Source of the DNA: Mobula birostris
Taxonomy: Eukaryota
DNA length: 64,000 bases
Assembly: GCF_030028105.1 (NCBI RefSeq)
Contig: NC_092374.1
Coordinates: 8,608,998 to 8,672,997, forward strand
Direction of reading: 5' to 3'
Under the pieces are notes generated by a model that was not told where the DNA came from, did no database searches, and worked only from the letters and a program-made list of their open reading frames with translations. Of the stretch, positions 2,641 to 54,166 are shown piece by piece; position 1 is the stretch's first letter, and every line of letters starts with the position of its first letter. Position numbers and translations under genes: made by a program.

Positions 2641-3202
2641 TCGCTCACTTCCACAGACTCCAATTCAAACTCTGCCCGGTTTCCTCCGCACGGTAAGCGT
2701 GGAGCTGCATCTGGACGCATTTCCAGCAGCTGAAGTGATCAGGGAAAGTGGAGGTCTCCCTAGTTTCCACGCGCTACAGGGGGAGCCTGCTTCTTGCCTG
2801 ACAGCCATCTCATCCACTCCAATAGGGATCACACGAGATTCTGCAGAATGTCGAAATCCAGAGCAACGGAGGGTCTCGGCTCTCACCATGGACTGTTTTC
2901 AAGGATTTCAAATTCCCTGGCCCCAATCATCTTATTTTTACTGTGGAGTGTAAGTGTAAAGTGGCCGCTGGTGAGGGGACGACGGGTTCTGTGGGGCTGT
3001 GGAGAGTGCTGGTGGTGGTGGATGGTGGGGTGGGTTAATGGGTGGAAGTGTTGATCAGCCTGGCAGCTCGAAGCAATAACTGTTTCTGTGTCTAGTGGTC
3101 TTGGCATGGATGTGCGATAAAGGATGTTCATAAATATAACTATTGAAAGCCTGCTCACACCTTCCAGTTGCTGCAACGCCAAATTGTCCGTCCTTCCCTC
3201 AG

Positions 3203-3595
3203 CTCCCGGCGAGAGTGTCTCTGTGATGAATGGAACCGAGGGAGCTTCGGCCACGTTACCCTGTGTGTTCACACGGCCTCCGCAGAGCCTCACTGCACAC
3301 ACGGTGACGTGGATGAGGAAGGATCCCTACCGACACATCGTCACATTCAGGCGTTATGAAAATGGATCGTGGGCAGCGGAAAACGGAGTGACTCGGTACG
3401 AGCTCGTCGGGGACCCAGAGCGGGGAAACGCTTCGACCAGGATAAGGCAGCTGAGGGTGGGGGACAGTCACAGCTACCTGTGTCTGGCTGATTTCAGCGA
3501 CTTTACCCACCCTTACCCACACTTCTACGGACACCAGCTCGATCCCCCATATATCCATCTGCCCCAGAGTGAGATCCGGCTGCGGGTCAGACCAG
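3203..3595 (+). CDS. Ig V-set domain exon (V2) of SIGLEC15-like receptor, plus-strand paralog
   Basis: Acceptor ccttccctcAG ends at 3202 and donor GTAAGA starts at 3596. The exon is 393 nt, phase 1-1 and open. It has the V-set framework LPCVF...VTW...GNAS.RI..L...D...YLC...IRLRV. About 79% aa identity to 48474-48869 by manual alignment. Confidence 0.9.
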
Positions 3596-6109
3596 GTAAG
3601 AAATCATTGACACATTCTGCAGGATACGGGGAGGAAGCTGGAGGGAAGGGAGGAAGGGGAACAGGGATGGAAGACGCACCTAACGACGTTGAGGCGGCTG
3701 TAGCCTCGCCTCTGAGAGGCCAGCTTCTGCAGAGTAGGAATCTGGGCTGTCAGGTGGAGAGCGGGGGAGGGGGGCAGATGAAAGAGGAAGCGGGTTTAGA
3801 GAAGTGTTCAGTGAAACACGGAGAGGGCAAGAGAACCGGCTGGAATATCGCAGACCAAAAATACAACACTCTGTCGTTTTGTTTAATAATGGAGTAAATA
3901 ACCCTAACGAGAATTCGATAAGGGACTGTCCAATGTTCATCTGGGGTAACACGGAGAAACTTAGTAAAGCGGCGGGTTCTTGGTAAACCAGAGAGACAAC
4001 GAGTTGTCATTTTTCCCAAGTAAGGGAGAGTTTAACTAGAGTAAAGATATTATACAACAATCTTATAACTATTACATAATTACATATAATTAAAAGTTCC
4101 CGAGAATGTTTCCTGGAATACAACAGTTAACGTATGAAGACCGTTTGATGGATTTGGGACTGTAGAACATAGAAAATCTACAGCACATTACAGGCCCTTC
4201 GGCCCACAATATTGTGCCTACCATGTAACCTACTGCCTATAATTTCCCTACCGCATAGCCCTCTATTTTTCTAAGCTGCATGTATCTAAGAGTCTCTTAA
4301 AAGACCCTACTGTATCCGCCTCTACCACCTTCGCTGGCAGTTCATTCCACGCACCCACCACTCTCTGTGCTAAAATCCTACCTCTGACGTTCCCCTTGTA
4401 CCTACTTCCAAGCACTTTAAAACTGTGACCCCTCGTGTTACCCATTTCAGCCCTGGGAAAAGAGCCTCTGGCTATCCACATGATCTATGCCTCTCATCAT
4501 CTTATACAGCTCTATCAGGTCACCTCTCGTCCTCCGACACTCCAAGGAGAAAAGGCCAAGTTCACTCAACCTATTCTCATAAGGTATCCTCTCCAATCCA
4601 GGCACCATCCTTGTAATTCTCCTCGACATTCTCTCTGTAGTATCCACATCTTTCCTGTAATGAGGTGACCAGAACTGAACACGGTACTCCAAATGGGGTC
4701 TAAGTAAGGTCTTATATAGCTGTAACATTACCTCACGTCTCTTGAACTCAATCCCACTGTTGATAAAGTCCAACACACTGTATGCCTTCTTAACAACACT
4801 GTCAACCTGCGCAGCAGCTTTGAGTGTTCTATGGACATGGTCCCCAAGATCCCACTGATCCTCCGCACTGCCAAGAGTCTTACCATTAATATTATATTCT
4901 GTCTTCAAATTTGACCTACCGAAATGAACCACTTCACAGACGGTTAAACTCCGTCTGTCTCTTCTCAGCCCAGTTCTGCATCCTATCGATGTCCCGCTGT
5001 AACCTTTGACAACCCCCCAGAGTATCCACAACACCACCAACCTTTGTGCCATCAGCAAACTTACTAACCCACCCTTCTATTTCTTCATCCAGGTCATTGA
5101 TAGAGAGCACAAAGAGGAGGTGTCCCAGAGCAGATCCATGCAGAACACCACTGGTCACCATCCTCCATGCCAAATACGAGCCATGCACAACCACTCTTTG
5201 TTTTCTGTGGTAAAGCCAATTCTGGATACACGAAGCAAGATCTCCTTGGATGCCATGCCTCATTACTTTCTGAATGAGACTTGAATGGGGAAACTTATCA
5301 AGTGTCTTACTGAAATCCAAATACACTACGTCCACTGCTCTACTTTCATCAATGTGTTTTGTTACATCTTTAAAAAATTTAATCAGGTTTTCAAGGGCAG
5401 GGTCTGCCCTTGACAAAATTATGTTGACTATCCCTAATCAGTTTATTTCTGTCCAAATGCTCATAAATCCTTCCTCTTAGGATCTTCTCCAACAACTTGC
5501 TCACCACTGAAGTAAGACTTACTGGGCTATAATTTCCTGGATTATCTTTACTCCCTTTCTTGATCAAGGGAACAACGTTTGCAACGTTCCAATCCTCTGG
5601 TACTTCTCCAGTCCCTATTGATGATGCAAAGAGAATTGCCAGAGGCTCAGCAATCTCTTCCCTCGCTTCCCACAGTAACCCGGGGTATACCTCGTCCAGT
5701 CCCGGCCACCTATCTAACTTAATACCTTTCAAAAGCTCCAGCACATCCTCTTTCTTAATGTCTATACGCTCAAGCGTTTCAGTCCTCTTTAGGTCATCCC
5801 CATAATTGCCAGGGTCCTTTTCACTGGTGAATACTGAAATAAAGTATTCATTAAGTGCCTCTGCTACATCCTATGGCTCCATGCACATGTTTCTGTTCTC
5901 ACTCCTGATTAGGGCTATTCTCACACGGCTCATCCTCTTGCCCTTCACATGTTCGTAGAATGCCTGGGGTTATTCTTTATCCTGCCCGCCAAGGCCTTTT
6001 CATGGCCATTTCTAGCTCTCCTAATTTCATTCTTGAGTTCCATCCTGCCACCCTTGTAATTTTCTAGAGTTCTAACAGTACCTCGTTTCTTGAATCTTTC
6101 GAAAGCCTT

Positions 6110-12469: not shown

Positions 12470-12569
12470 GGACAGACGCTTTTGCCGTGCTGATGTTGTG
12501 TATCCCACTCGGATTGAAAACTCTCGCCCTTTTAGTGATGGGCGCCGTTCTCTGCTGTGACAAACTCAG
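12470..12569 (+). CDS. Transmembrane exon of plus-strand SIGLEC15-like receptor (central Lys)
   Basis: Acceptor ttcacttcAG ends at 12469. Phase-1 frame reads GTDAFAVLMLCIPLGLKTLALLVMGAVLCCDKL. Donor CAG|GTACCG follows 12569; read-through would give RYRAQ* with TAA at 12583-12585. 95 of 100 nt identical to 47496-47595. Confidence 0.85.
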
Positions 12570-13439
12570 GTACCGTGCACAATAATGCTGAAGGCTCTTG
12601 CCGTGACGTGACTGAAATCTGATTCACTGAGACAGTCGGTGGGCGTTGGGAAGCGATTCGAACACTTGAAGCGTCCAGTAGGTATTCGCCTACGAACACC
12701 TCATTGCTGGCGTGGGAGCCTTTGATACTCAGAAAATGGTTGCTAAATTTTCTACATCATAACAGTGACTGCTTCAAACGTGTTTATTATATGTTTACAT
12801 TTTGAAAAACCTTTCGTATCGAAAATACCTGGTAAATACCACCGAATGATAGAAAAATGGAGGGATATGTAGGAGGGAAGGGCGCCACAGTAGCGTAGCG
12901 GCTCAGTAGTTTGTGTCCATTTCTCTTGCATTATGGACAATCAGTTTCCTGCTTAATTTACAACCGCTGTCTGTTATGTCCCCAGTACCTTGCATGTACT
13001 TAACACCCTGTGTACCCATTTCTCTCTGTTCCTTAATAGTCCAGGAGAACTAACATCCAAAGTCTATTCCATAAAAATTTCGCTGCAGCCAAGATATTGC
13101 ATCTGCCATTCATAAAAGGATCTCCCTTTAGAGCAAAGAATACAAGGAATTTATTGCCACAAACTGCTGTGGGTATATTTAAAGCGGAGATTGATAGGAT
13201 CTTGATTTGTAAGAGTGTCAAAGATTACGAGATGGGGGCATAAGAATGGGTTGGGAGGGACAATAACTCAACCACGATAGAATAGCAGAACAGAATAGAA
13301 GGACTGAATGCCCTAATTCTGCTCTGAAGTCTTCTGGTTTTCTGGACTTAATCTAAGTATCGTACTATTTGATAAATATTATACCATAGTCCGAGACCAT
13401 CCTCCTTTCTACCAACACTACCTACTGTATGCTTGGCAT

Positions 13440-14182: not shown

Positions 14183-14408
14183 TATATTGTGTGTCACTGC
14201 AAAGCTTCCAATTCATTGTGTATCTGTGCTCATCTCCAATGTTGTTGTCAAACATTGATACCAACGATGATATTTATCCTGCGGAAAATCCCGTTCAAGT
14301 CTCGATCTAAATCCCTTCAAAGGCTGTAAGTGAATGGGGAGGCCGGATTAGGTCTTGTTGTACAACTGCCAGGGAGGTTCATGTTAACTGGTCTTGTTCT
14401 GTCCACAG

Positions 14409-14529
14409 AAAGGGAGGAGACTCATGCACCGCAGGAGGCAGAGAAGACCAGACTTCCAAGAACCAGGAACAGACGCCCCGCCCTCCTCGCTCCATCAGCT
14501 TACCGCACTCTGGGTGCGGGCATTTCTGA
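14409..14529 (+). CDS. Candidate cytoplasmic-tail exon of the plus-strand receptor (speculative)
   Basis: Branch-like gttaac, pyrimidine tract and CAG ending at 14408. The phase-2 frame joins the TM donor to give RKGGDSCTAGGREDQTSKNQEQTPRPPRSISLPHSGCGHF*. No clear homolog in the minus gene. Confidence 0.25.
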
Positions 14530-47210: not shown

Positions 47211-47495
47211 CCTAACCCATCCCTCCTGCATATCCTTACATTTGTCTATCATTCAGTGGGTGTTTAGCAGAGACATTCAATCTGAAAGCTATCTCAAAAT
47301 GCTAAATAGCTGACAAACGTGGACTATTTTCTGCGTAGCTCCGACAAACAGCAATCTGATAATGAGTTGTTTGTCGACAATACCGACTGGGACGCCTTAA
47401 TGTTTGAGTCAGTTTCCAACTCCCACCGACCGTCTCAGTGAATCTGATTTCAGTCACGTCACGGCAAAAGCCTTCTGCATTATTTCATACAGTAC

Positions 47496-47595
47496 CTGAG
47501 TAAGTCACAGCAGAGAACGGCGCCCATCACTAACAGGGCGAGAGTTTTCAATCCGAGTGGGATACACAACATCAACTCGGCAAAAGCGTCTGTCC
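47496..47595 (-). CDS. Transmembrane exon of minus-strand SIGLEC15-like receptor (central Lys)
   Basis: Acceptor ttcacttcAG at 47597-47596. Reads GTDAFAELMLCIPLGLKTLALLVMGAVLCCDLL. Donor CAG|GTACTG; read-through gives RYCMK* with TAA at 47482-47480. Confidence 0.87.
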
Positions 47596-48473
47596 CTGAA
47601 GTGAAAGTGAGAGAGGTCAATCCAGACTCGGAAAAGGGGGAGAGACCAATAATGTAGACTGATTGAAATGGGTAGATATGGGGATGAACATATAATTTAG
47701 TAGATTTATACCGATGGCACTGCGGAAGATAACTTTTGTGTGATGGAATAAGACAAGGATATTACTAAGAATGTAGAGATCAGGAAAACGTCAGAACAAA
47801 AAATAATTAACCTGCAGTAAGACCATAGATCAGAAGACATAGGAGCCGAACTAGGCCATTCGACCAATCGAGTCAGCTCCGCTATTCCATCATGGCCGAT
47901 TAGTTATCCCTCTCAACCCCATTCTACTGCAATCTCCCCGTAAAATTTGACGCCCTTAATAATCAAGAGCCTACAAACCTCCGCTTGAAGACCAAAGACC
48001 TGATCTCCACAGTTACCTGTGGCAATGAATTCCACATATTCGCTACCCTCTGGCTAAAGAAATTCATTCTCCTCGCTGTTCTAAAGGGACGTCCCTGCAT
48101 TCTGGGGCTGTGCCTTATGGATCCAGATTCCACCCCCCCCCCCCACCCACCATGAATCTTCTCCACATCCCCTCTATCTACGCCATTCGACATTCGATAG
48201 GGTTCAAGGAGATGGCTCTGGCTTTTTATAAACTCCATCGAATACAGTCCCAGAACCATCAAACGCTCCTCATACGTCAACCTTTTCATTCCTTTCTCTA
48301 AACCCGCTATCCCTCTGACTGCCCCCTATCCCCCGCTCTCCGTGCGACATCCGAGATTCAAAGGCGGGGCTGCAGCCGCCTGAATGTCGTTAGATGCGTC
48401 TTCCTATTTCTGCTCCCCTTCCTGTATCTAATCTTCTCCCCGTACCCTACAGAATGTGGCAATGTTTTCTTAC

Positions 48474-48869
48474 CAGGTCTGACCCGCAGCCTGATCTCAC
48501 TCTGGGACACATGGATATATGGGGGATTGAGATAGTGTCCGTAGAAGAAGTGTGGATAACGGTAGTCCGAGTCCCTGAACTCAGCCAGACACAGGTAACC
48601 GTGAGCGTCCTCAACAGCAGGCTGCTTTATCCTGGTCGAGGCGTTTCCCAGTTCTGGGTTCCCGACGAGCTCGTACCGAGTCACTCCGTTTTCCGCTGCC
48701 CACGATCCATGTCCTCGGTGCCTGAATGTGACGATGTGTCGGTAGGGATCCTTCCTCATCCACGTCACCGTGTGCGCGGTGAGGTTCTGCGGAGGCCCTG
48801 TGAACACATACGGTAACGTGGCTGAAGCTCCCTCAGTTCCAGTCATCACAGAGACACTGTCGCCGGGAG
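48474..48869 (-). CDS. Ig V-set exon V2 of minus-strand receptor (B-strand Cys replaced by Tyr)
   Basis: Acceptor ccttccctcAG at 48871-48870 and donor GTAAGA at 48473. The exon is 396 nt, phase 1-1 and open. Confidence 0.92.
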
Positions 48870-50895: not shown

Positions 50896-51548
50896 TAAGT
50901 ATTTGCCTTCTCTGTTCCCCTGGACTGTCGACTTTCATAATTCCGCTGCTTCGTTTTCTGGAGGCGGGGAAGGGATTGAAGATTTTCTGGGCACCGGGTA
51001 CATACAGGAGAGTTCCTGGATTTCCCTCGGAGTGACAGAGAGTTTACAGCTGGGAAGGAAGACATTCGGTCACTTGACAAACTCCCTGACTCTTCATTCT
51101 GTCTCTATTCTCAGAGTTTAAATACTATCAGATTATTCACCAAATCCCATGCCTCCGGCTTTTGCTGCTCTTAATAAAAGAAGCCAATATTGTCCAACTT
51201 CTGTTCGCAACCACTTTCCAATCTATTAAACCCCTTCTGAATACTCTCCAACGCTTCCATACCCTTCCTCTAATGTAGCTCCTAGATCAGCACAGAAATC
51301 TCCTAATGTCGGTTCTCCAAAGTTTTATAAAGCTGCAACACTTTTATCTCAAACTGCCCGACCAAATATACCAGAGCCAGCGTTTCATGCAGGTCCCCAA
51401 GCACACTGCCCAACAGGATTTACCGGAGAGGGATCCGGATCAGGGTCCCCGACACTTCACTCCCACATTTATTGATCAGGTTTGGACCATAGGGATCCTG
51501 TGGTCCTTGCGCTCTGAGGCAGCTACAGTACCTGAATTTGGTCCTCAC

Positions 51549-51935
51549 CTCTCACAGAGAGCTCCGTTAGAACCACTGTTCGAAATTTATTAGTATTGAG
51601 CTCCACCTGGCACCAATACCGACCACCGTCACTCCGGTTCAGACGCTGCACCATTATCGAAATGTCTCTTTGAATGAAGTTCTCCACGAATCCGAACCGC
51701 CCTCCTCCAGTCTCCTGTGTCGTTATTTCGCACCGGGAGCGGCCGGGACTGGGAAATGTGCAATTAAGCACCAGCTTTTTAGCACCTGATTCCACCCTGT
51801 ACCAGATCACGGAACCGAAAAGGGCGACGTCAGTGGGTGGGTGGGTGAAAGTCCACGGTAACACAGCTGAGGCCCCTTCCACCGCAGAGACCACATCAGC
51901 GCCGGACATTGACCAACCACGGATCGAATTGTCTG
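51549..51935 (-). CDS. Ig V-set exon V1, SIGLEC15-like N-terminal domain (B-strand Cys replaced by Trp)
   Basis: Acceptor (ct)nCAG|CAG with both AGs in phase 1, and donor G|GTGAGG at 51548. Reads WSMSGADVVSAVEGASAVLPWTFTHP...GSVIWYR...NCTFPSPGRSRC...GRF...DISIMVQRLNRSDGGRYWCQVE...TELSV, which matches my recollection of SIGLEC15 V-set motifs (WSM, LPCTFTHP, extra Cys pair, YFCRVE). Confidence 0.92.
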
Positions 51936-52560: not shown

Positions 52561-53435
52561 CAGGGGTCTGTCATTGTCTGTTCCCCGGATCTGTTGGATT
52601 TATAATCCTCCTGCATCAGAGGGAAAGTAGTTGGAGATTCTGGGTATTGGTTGCAAACAGGAGAGTTCTTGGAATTACCTCAGAGTGAAAGAAAGGTTAC
52701 AGCTGGGTACGATAACATTCAACCTATTAAACTCATACTGGCCCGGTGTAAGAACCACCCACGCAGTCCGACTCGCCAATCCTCTCTCCACCGCCCCGCG
52801 AATTCATTTCAGACACTTGTAGCTCTCTCCTTTTCAACGCCGCCTTCCTACCTGGCCCCACGTTTCATTTCGAACACTACTGGGGTGGAAATAATGTGGC
52901 CAGGCAACTCTACAGCTCTTCGTCGAATCACTTTCATTCTGTAACGACATTTTTTCCCCGTCCACCAATGGGAACAGCCTCCCTCAGTCCACACTCTTCA
53001 TAATTTTAACTCTCCAACCCCGTCCCCCCAAAAGCAGGTCTCCATCGGGTATGTGGGTTAGAAGCAGGAGGCCTCGGCACCTCTAGATCTCACCACCATT
53101 GAAGCTGATCTACGTTAAACTCAACTCCCGATCCTCTCCCGCCGCCTAAATCCATCCACCCTCCCATGTGCCGAGGGTTCCACTCTGGGTTACAAAGTCC
53201 TGGGATCCAGATGTGTGTTCCTCCAGCTGTCAGGTCACCAGATCACCTCTACCAGAGGGAGTGTAGTGTGCGAAGGAGGAGGATCAGTCAGGAGCGCTTA
53301 GGGTTGGAAAGTCTCCCAATATCCCCTCACTCCCTGAGTGTAATCCAAGGCCCAGACAGCTGTAGAGCTGCCACAGCGGAAACCCGAATATTCGGATGAG
53401 GCAAGGAGATAATGAGGATAATGAAAAACACTTAC

Positions 53436-53496
53436 TGTATCCCTGGACTGAGATGGATAGCAGGATCGTGCAGAGGCAAACCCGGAGGGAACGCAT
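53436..53496 (-). CDS. Signal-peptide exon of minus-strand receptor
   Basis: ATG at 53496, MRSLRVCLCTILLSISVQGY, then A|GTAAGT (consensus donor). Phase 1, compatible with the V1 acceptor. Confidence 0.85.
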
Positions 53497-54166
53497 CGCC
53501 AACGCGTTAGTCTGACATCCTTTGTGCATCCTAAAACTGAAATGCAGAAGTCGTGTCAAGTATTGGTCATTTCGTCAAAGATCCACCACCCTTATAAACG
53601 GGTTATAATTCGACAAATCACTGATTTCTAACTGAACAGGGTTGGTATGTTGCAAGAGCAGCACCTTGTGGGCATCACGCATACGCATTCAGTCGTGACC
53701 ATCTGAAAACGGAAGAAGCCCCTGAGCAGTGCGGAGAGTTCGGATGCGTTCCCAAAACTGAACTTGAGAGGGCAAAGGGTAGCAATAAAGTTTCAACAGC
53801 AGACATGATTAAGGAGGTTCCTAAAACATTTCAAAATTCATTTACTCTCCTTAACCAAAACGTGTGTACCTTTGGGATGCCCGGGGTGAATTCCAATTAT
53901 TTATTCAGACTTGCTCAAAAATTCTGAATTCCCACAAGCCATTTTAAGTGAGGGCAGCTCTGACAAAATGTTCTGCTTCTCCCCGGGTTTGAAGGGTTTA
54001 TGGATGGAGGTAATCAGTGTTAAAAGCTGGCTGAAGCAGTCACGGTGGTCGATTTACCGTTGTGTGATATCAATGGCTGCCATCCCAACCTATTGTCCCC
54101 TCAAATATCTCCAAATTAATTCCCATATTGAGCAAAATATAAAGGATGGGTAAAAATTGAACAGTA

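Follow-up and report, generated by a model that had tools for sequence, protein, structure and literature searches.

Siglec-15, the closest described counterpart of the receptors analysed here, is a conserved single gene whose product has a lysine-bearing membrane span followed by a short tail, the activating layout of DAP12-type receptors. Long, Tyr-rich third hypervariable loops are carried on the V domains of IgNAR and of bovine antibodies with ultralong CDR3, where they are made by V(D)J recombination and braced by extra cysteines, and in CD28 and CTLA-4 the Pro/Tyr-rich FG loop of a germline V-set domain (MYPPPY) is a ligand contact. No living lineage with antibodies and T-cell receptors is older than the cartilaginous fishes, whose germline-encoded leukocyte receptors are, to our knowledge, almost unstudied. 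Paired receptor families, among them PILR alpha/beta, Siglec-5/14, KIR, SIRP and teleost NILT, combine near-identical ectodomains with either a charged transmembrane (TM) segment or an ITIM-bearing tail; PILR beta is reported to pair with DAP12 (PMC2211832), and in one account the teleost NILT receptors have one or two domains of the V type together with ITAM or ITIM (PMC3022915).

Here we describe two genes, gene a on the plus strand and gene b on the minus strand, that are arranged tail-to-tail in a 64,000-nucleotide stretch of Mobula birostris DNA (the window; Table 1). The domain encoded by the V2 exon of gene a (V2a) matches residues 148–279 of M. birostris protein P0173 exactly, and the two V domains of gene b (V2b and V1b) are identical to M. 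birostris protein P0185; the signal and V1 exons of gene a fall beyond the left end of the window. The domain order of the receptor is signal peptide, V1, V2, Lys-bearing TM helix and short tail. No C2-set exon was found between the V2 and TM exons of gene a or gene b, and translation of the gene a tail revealed no ITIM or ITAM. The hallmark of DAP12-type receptors, a lysine or arginine in the TM span together with a short motif-free tail, was found, with the TM sequence IPLGLKTLALLVM in both genes. Judged by sequence, both window genes have an activating, DAP12-type layout, from which pairing with an adaptor may be expected. The possibility that genes a and b form an activating/inhibitory pair was rejected, because both carry a Lys-bearing TM segment. 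Two LINE-like insertions bearing reverse transcriptase (minus-strand ORFs 958–2640 and 4170–6054) flank the V2a exon and inflate the V1–V2 and V2–TM introns of gene a, the latter being 8.9 kb as against 0.9 kb in gene b.

Table 1. Features of genes a and b in the window, with the basis on which each was placed.
Feature	Coordinates	Strand	Basis or remark
V2 exon of gene a	3203..3595	+	Membrane-proximal V-set Ig domain; AG/GT bounds; phase 1-1
YLC-to-IRLRV stretch of V2a, 30 residues (domain residues 95–124)	3484..3573	+	Translation in exon frame (from 3202)
Hypervariable FG core of V2a, domain residues 99–114, 16 aa	3496..3543	+	Column entropy and pairwise identity
Alternative terminal exon start (rest of Gly codon, His, stop)	5093..5100	+	Inside LINE-like element at about 4170–6050
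Transmembrane exon of gene a, Lys in span (IPLGLKTLALLVM)	12470..12570	+	Hydrophobicity scan; tblastn with M. hypostoma ortholog P0174
Cytoplasmic tail exon of gene a, short	14395..14526	+	tblastn, 89% identity to P0174 residues 308–351; translation
Transmembrane exon of gene b, also Lys in span (IPLGLKTLALLVM)	47495..47596	-	Sequence; tblastn
V2 exon of gene b, 31-residue loop, B-strand Cys to Tyr	48474..48869	-	Exact P0185 match
V1 exon of gene b, Siglec-15-like V-set, B-strand Cys to Trp, F-strand Arg to Gln	about 51540..51927	-	
Signal-peptide exon of gene b	53431..53529	-	ORF; tblastn with P0185 residues 1–33

V2a is a V-set domain (Pfam PF07686, E 3e-12, 47.1 bits against a cut-off of 26) in which both cysteines of the B–F disulfide positions, Cys21 and Cys94, are present, and the phase of its exon is the one usual for Ig-domain exons. 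The G strand (IRLRV) is encoded in the same exon as the rest of the domain, with no separate J, and a search of the few hundred bases around each V2 exon gave no exact match to an RSS heptamer or nonamer. Together with splicing from 3595 to downstream exons, the lack of an RSS and the same-exon G strand rule out a rearranging Ig, TCR or IgNAR V segment. The preliminary description of V2 as a germline-encoded, non-rearranging V-set domain is therefore upheld.

Translation places 30 residues between the YLC and IRLRV anchors of V2a, 31 between the same anchors of V2b (48496–48588, minus strand) and 14 between YWC and TELSV in the V1 domain of gene b, the same counts as had been given for V2a, V2b and V1 in the preliminary description. 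The CDR3-like region of V2a is indeed unusually long: the equivalent distance is 17 residues in Siglec-15, 16–17 in Heterodontus and Mustelus and 20 in Heptranchias, and ranges from 12 to 35 in batoids. However, this is the length between anchors and not that of a 30-residue loop. Strand assignment with AF2 divides the V2a stretch into an F-strand extension, an FG loop and a G-strand extension, with the first four to five residues (LADF) and the last eight to ten (PPYIHLPQSE) conserved and modelled as strand, and only about 16 residues form the hypervariable loop itself. The V2a stretch contains four histidines, three tyrosines and five prolines, and no cysteine.

Global alignment of the two V2 exons recovered the ten substitutions and the sole indel that had been noted in the loop, all within 31 loop columns, as against 17 substitutions over the 102 columns outside it. 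The clustering of substitutions is modest, since enrichment over the whole 30-residue stretch is weak (Fisher OR 2.5, p = 0.07) and becomes clearer when only the 16-residue core (residues 99–114) is considered (7/16 vs 20/116, OR 3.7, p = 0.02). The single indel amounts to one TTC codon adjoining another TTC (3523–3528 vs 48541–48549), and runs of the YYYYY type occur in the loops of relatives, which together suggest that variation in loop length may come from codon slippage.

We next consider the transcripts. Four same-species runs cover positions 3201–3600 but are empty or nearly so over the unique flanks at 2801–3200 and 3601–4000, indicating that these runs behave as RNA. RNA contigs are continuous over 3401–3596, 3402–3596 and 3462–3596, that is, through the loop to the exon end, and no splice joint that removes the loop was found in the RNA contigs over the gene a V2 exon. 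Excision of the loop from an internal donor, a possibility that the preliminary description had raised, can be discounted, because the sole GT within the stretch lies at its very end (3569) and the contigs pass it unbroken to 3595. The loop is thus present in transcribed RNA. Contigs of runs X1 and X8 also contain a spliced joint from 3595 to 5093 with GT..AG ends, the product of which ends in RPGH and agrees with the annotated isoform P0173; this isoform of gene a lacks a TM segment and is presumably secreted or soluble. For gene b, 60% of the sampled V2 words occur in the RNA-like run X8, and expression of this gene is accordingly proposed only tentatively, from word sharing with one RNA-like run. 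A third M. birostris paralog (P0184/P0005), which belongs to a different subfamily and has a 24-residue loop, is transcribed in the same RNA runs; its transcripts match the conserved F-strand sequence and diverge exactly at the loop start. These transcripts explain the loose contig ends at 3491 and 3227, which had been considered as a candidate chimeric transcript joining the framework to another loop.

When V2 was searched against 1.8 billion representative proteins, 16 matches below 1e-30 were returned, and those that were looked up are elasmobranch proteins; more distant matches come from lungfish and lamprey. The family has so far been named by automatic pipelines alone, NCBI names being mostly 'uncharacterized', with some Siglec-15, sialoadhesin-like, HAVCR1-like and pIgR-like, and our search of the literature found no description of it. 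These sequence matches indicate an elasmobranch-wide, multigene, Siglec-15-related family, the expansions of which are clustered and lineage-specific. A related but distinct M. birostris protein of 874 aa with multiple V domains and a short FG loop (P0011, YFCHVW...) is encoded on the same 210-Mb chromosome, which suggests further Siglec-15-like expansions there.

The best single-domain sequence match in the PDB is human Siglec-15 (7zoz), with 36.7 bits for V2 and E values of 6e-9 for V1b and 3e-13 for the V1 domain of gene a (V1a). V1a aligns with Siglec-15 at the F-strand arginine, which in Siglecs binds the carboxylate of sialic acid, and at the extra cysteine pair, whereas V2 has Leu95 at the arginine position and is missing the extra cysteines. 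The V1 arginine is itself not fixed, as it is replaced by lysine in the M. hypostoma ortholog and by glutamine in gene b. The window genes resemble Siglec-15 in having a lysine in the TM span and a short tail, but differ in that their second domain is V-set rather than C2-set and in that they belong to a multigene family with ITIM-bearing partners. V2 therefore has neither the F-strand arginine nor the V-set-then-C2-set order of Siglecs; the proteins lack these two defining features, yet their sequences clearly point to derivation from a Siglec-15-like V domain.

A family member has either a short tail behind a Lys-bearing TM segment or a C-terminal ITIM-like motif (such as VIYAEV or VTYAAV) behind a plain TM segment. 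Both forms occur within each of Mustelus, Heterodontus, Leucoraja, Amblyraja and Hemitrygon, and their V2 loops there are identical or nearly so, so that paired activating and inhibitory receptors are found at the level of the family and not in the two window genes. The near-identical ectodomains joined to charged TM segments or ITIM tails are shared with the paired families introduced above. The V type is different, however, being Siglec-15-like, and the membrane-proximal domain carries an FG insertion that is hypervariable and varies in length.

To describe this variability we aligned 61 V2-type domains and calculated column entropy over the 45 that belong to this family. Per-site variability, which the preliminary description had proposed to plot, is concentrated in three hypervariable regions at the CDR1, CDR2 and CDR3 positions (BC 25–33, C'C'' 51–54 and FG core 99–114), and the FG core is the most variable of them, with column entropies of 2.2–3.2 bits and nearly all of the indels. 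Mean pairwise identity among 16 stingray-clade domains is 85% for the framework, 74% for BC, 41% for C'C'' and 38% for the FG core, and returns to 83–87% in the FG flanks. The conserved flanks comprise, across the family, the first four residues after the cysteine (LAEF/LVEF) and the last ten (PPYIH..QSE). It can be concluded from these alignments that the FG core is, at the family level, the most variable part of V2 in both sequence and length.

A tree calculated without the loop columns places the sharks basally and the batoids in one clade (SH-aLRT 99), and on this framework-only tree shifts in length occur between close paralogs, for example 35 versus 23 in Rhinoraja. The comparison indicates that in rays and skates the V2 FG turn grew from about five residues to 8–21. 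Tyrosine makes up 11.5% of the FG core against 3.2% of the framework, and Lys, Asp, Arg and His are also enriched. The His/Tyr/Pro-rich character ascribed to the loop therefore applies to the Mobula copies only, the family-wide bias being towards Tyr, Lys, Asp, Arg and His. Batoid V2 domains retain PP(Y/F)(I/T)H at the C-terminal end of the loop, recalling the MYPPPY loop of CD28 and CTLA-4; this is an analogy only, as the batoid motif sits in the conserved flank where the modelled G strand begins, and we found no sequence relationship between the V2 loop and CD28/CTLA-4.

Codon-level analysis of the a–b pair (Nei-Gojobori) gave a dN of 0.199 and a dS of 0.087 for the loop, a ratio of 2.3 with only 1.5 synonymous changes behind the loop dS, as against a dN of 0.096 and a dS of 0.212 for the rest of the exon and a dN/dS of 0.45 for the framework. 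The loop dN is about equal to the dS of the whole exon (0.187), and below the divergence of about 0.3–0.4 of the downstream intron, which is 70.5% identical between the genes (3596–3803 vs 48267–48473). The loop therefore evolves at about the neutral rate when measured against whole-exon dS, and more slowly than neutral when measured against the intron. Between M. birostris and its M. hypostoma ortholog, 1/30 loop residues differ compared with 6/102 elsewhere, giving no excess in the loop. The earlier view of the loop as diversifying between paralogs thus holds as family-level hypervariability (38% against 85% identity), whereas positive selection on it is not established. We also observed that the V2 exon is 87% identical between a and b while the adjoining intron is only 70.5% identical, with exon dS below the intron divergence; possible explanations are gene conversion limited to the exon and constraint acting on synonymous sites.

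Gene b itself departs from the family pattern. The B-strand cysteine is lost from both of its Ig domains, being replaced by Tyr in V2 (48807–48809) and by Trp in V1 (about 51820), and its V2 is the sole domain without this cysteine among the 45 family V2 domains aligned. Despite both cysteine losses and that of the V1 arginine, it keeps an intact four-exon ORF, and gene b would be a young pseudogene or else a receptor that lacks the disulfides. Since the B-strand cysteine has gone from both domains, relaxed constraint in gene b may add to the a–b divergence. In the V1 alignment one or both canonical V1 cysteines are missing from some Narcine bancroftii members as well (LPFHF, YWSRVEL), indicating that disulfide-less V1 domains recur in the family.

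An AF2 model of V2 alone, built from the 61 aligned sequences, has a mean pLDDT of 86 and the strands A, B, C, C', C'', D, E, F and G, with the F strand at residues 90–99, the G strand at 122–130 and the loop between them at pLDDT 52–65. When V1 and V2 were modelled together (pTM 0.86), the F strand extended to residue 100, the G strand began at Tyr117 and the loop rose to pLDDT 73–87. In the general topology of tandem Ig domains, V2 points its CDR-like end towards the base of V1. This topology and the rise in pLDDT with V1 attached lead us to place the loop, with confidence values that are moderate for the loop itself, at the V1–V2 junction rather than in free projection, and the models lend no support to the protruding finger envisaged in the preliminary description. 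Prediction of V1 and V2 as separate chains in a complex scored 0.01, which speaks neither for nor against their contact. Foldseek returned only generic V-set matches for the single-domain model (nectin, CAR, CRIg, TIM) and no informative long-loop analogue. For the two-domain model the best match was JAML (PDB 3MJ6, E 3e-16), which is likewise a tandem of two V domains and is also matched by V1 in sequence. However, the TM-score of 0.41 and rmsd of 11 Å indicate that the predicted domain arrangement is not that of JAML, and we know of no long FG loop, Lys-bearing TM segment or ITIM pairing in JAML.

The loop is thus real, expressed, germline-encoded, CDR3-like and hypervariable at the family level. 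On balance, we consider it most likely to be part of a paralog-specific recognition surface on V2, beside V1, in a DAP12-type receptor of a paired family derived from a Siglec-15-like ancestor. In such a receptor BC, C'C'' and the FG core would together form the surface atop V2, adjoining the base of V1; the binding of each receptor would be tuned by this surface, with V1 retaining a Siglec-like face, and length variants would arise by codon slippage and possibly also by exchange between paralogs. Adaptor pairing, ligand contact and the position of the loop at the V1–V2 junction are what we infer from the layout, the variability and the models. Against a recognition surface, the main ligand site would lie unusually close to the membrane, V2 being the membrane-proximal domain, and the loop dN is close to the exon dS, the ortholog shows no excess in the loop and gene b has lost its cysteines.

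These same observations bear on the chief rival, in which the long FG loop would serve mainly as a weakly constrained structural element, a buttress or spacer on V1 that sets the V1–V2 angle or the height of the stalk, with slippage altering its length and the ligand site lying in V1. We regard this as rather unlikely, although several findings are consistent with it: the CDR-like end of V2 would face V1, the presence of V1 is needed for the higher model confidence and for the longer F and G strands, the F-strand arginine of Siglecs is retained in V1a but is leucine in V2, the loop dN is not above the neutral estimates and the M. hypostoma ortholog shows no acceleration. Simple relaxed constraint is nevertheless unlikely to be so patterned, since the variability is concentrated in the three CDR-equivalent loops and the flanks are conserved like the framework. 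The Tyr- and charge-rich composition of the core is, moreover, typical of binding loops, and the V1 arginine to which a ligand site might be assigned is itself unconserved (Lys in M. hypostoma, Gln in gene b).

A more far-reaching form of the recognition hypothesis, which we think doubtful, is that rays and skates evolved, within this paired family, a germline 'CDR3 repertoire', a Tyr-rich FG insertion in V2 whose length and sequence would be varied across paralogs by slippage and exchange under pathogen-driven selection, in convergence with antibody CDR-H3; a secreted recognition molecule could then be supplied by the soluble isoform of gene a. Improbable, and unsupported by the present analysis, is the suggestion that the loop is a free-standing finger which, like the CDR3 of IgNAR or bovine antibodies, binds metal or pathogen ligands by itself through its His and Tyr residues. 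The V2 loop does share a long, Tyr-rich third hypervariable position on a V domain with those molecules, but it has no RSS or cysteines and its G strand is in the same exon. The 30 residues as against 17 in Siglec-15, the four His, three Tyr and five Pro of the gene a copy, the hypervariability across the family and a paired activating/inhibitory layout of the kind that often accompanies pathogen-driven evolution would all fit a finger. Only about 16 of these residues are true loop, however, the rest being strand extensions; neither stabilising cysteines nor a beta-hairpin stalk is predicted and confidence is low in the isolated domain; the His and Pro richness is specific to Mobula rather than a trait of the family; and the domain is membrane-proximal. 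Finally, it is very improbable that the a–b difference is largely decay of gene b as a young pseudogene with an intact frame, with no bearing on function, since the loss of the B-strand cysteines from V1 and V2 and of the V1 arginine, in the sole one of 45 family V2 domains so affected, is offset by an ORF intact over four exons and annotated as P0185, the V2 words in an RNA-like run, a framework dN/dS of 0.45, the similar lack of V1 cysteines in some Narcine members and a family-level hypervariability that is independent of gene b.

The receptors described here show how Siglec-15, a lectin receptor type conserved as a single copy, could duplicate into a paired multigene family, and how in batoids a hypervariable loop resembling those of antibodies was gained without any rearrangement. 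Should the role of the loop be structural alone, the result amounts to the orderly annotation of a receptor family particular to one lineage. If, as we favour, the loop is a ligand contact, the family would offer a set of naturally occurring loop variants on a common scaffold, useful for studies of the host–pathogen arms race in elasmobranchs and possibly for the engineering of binders.
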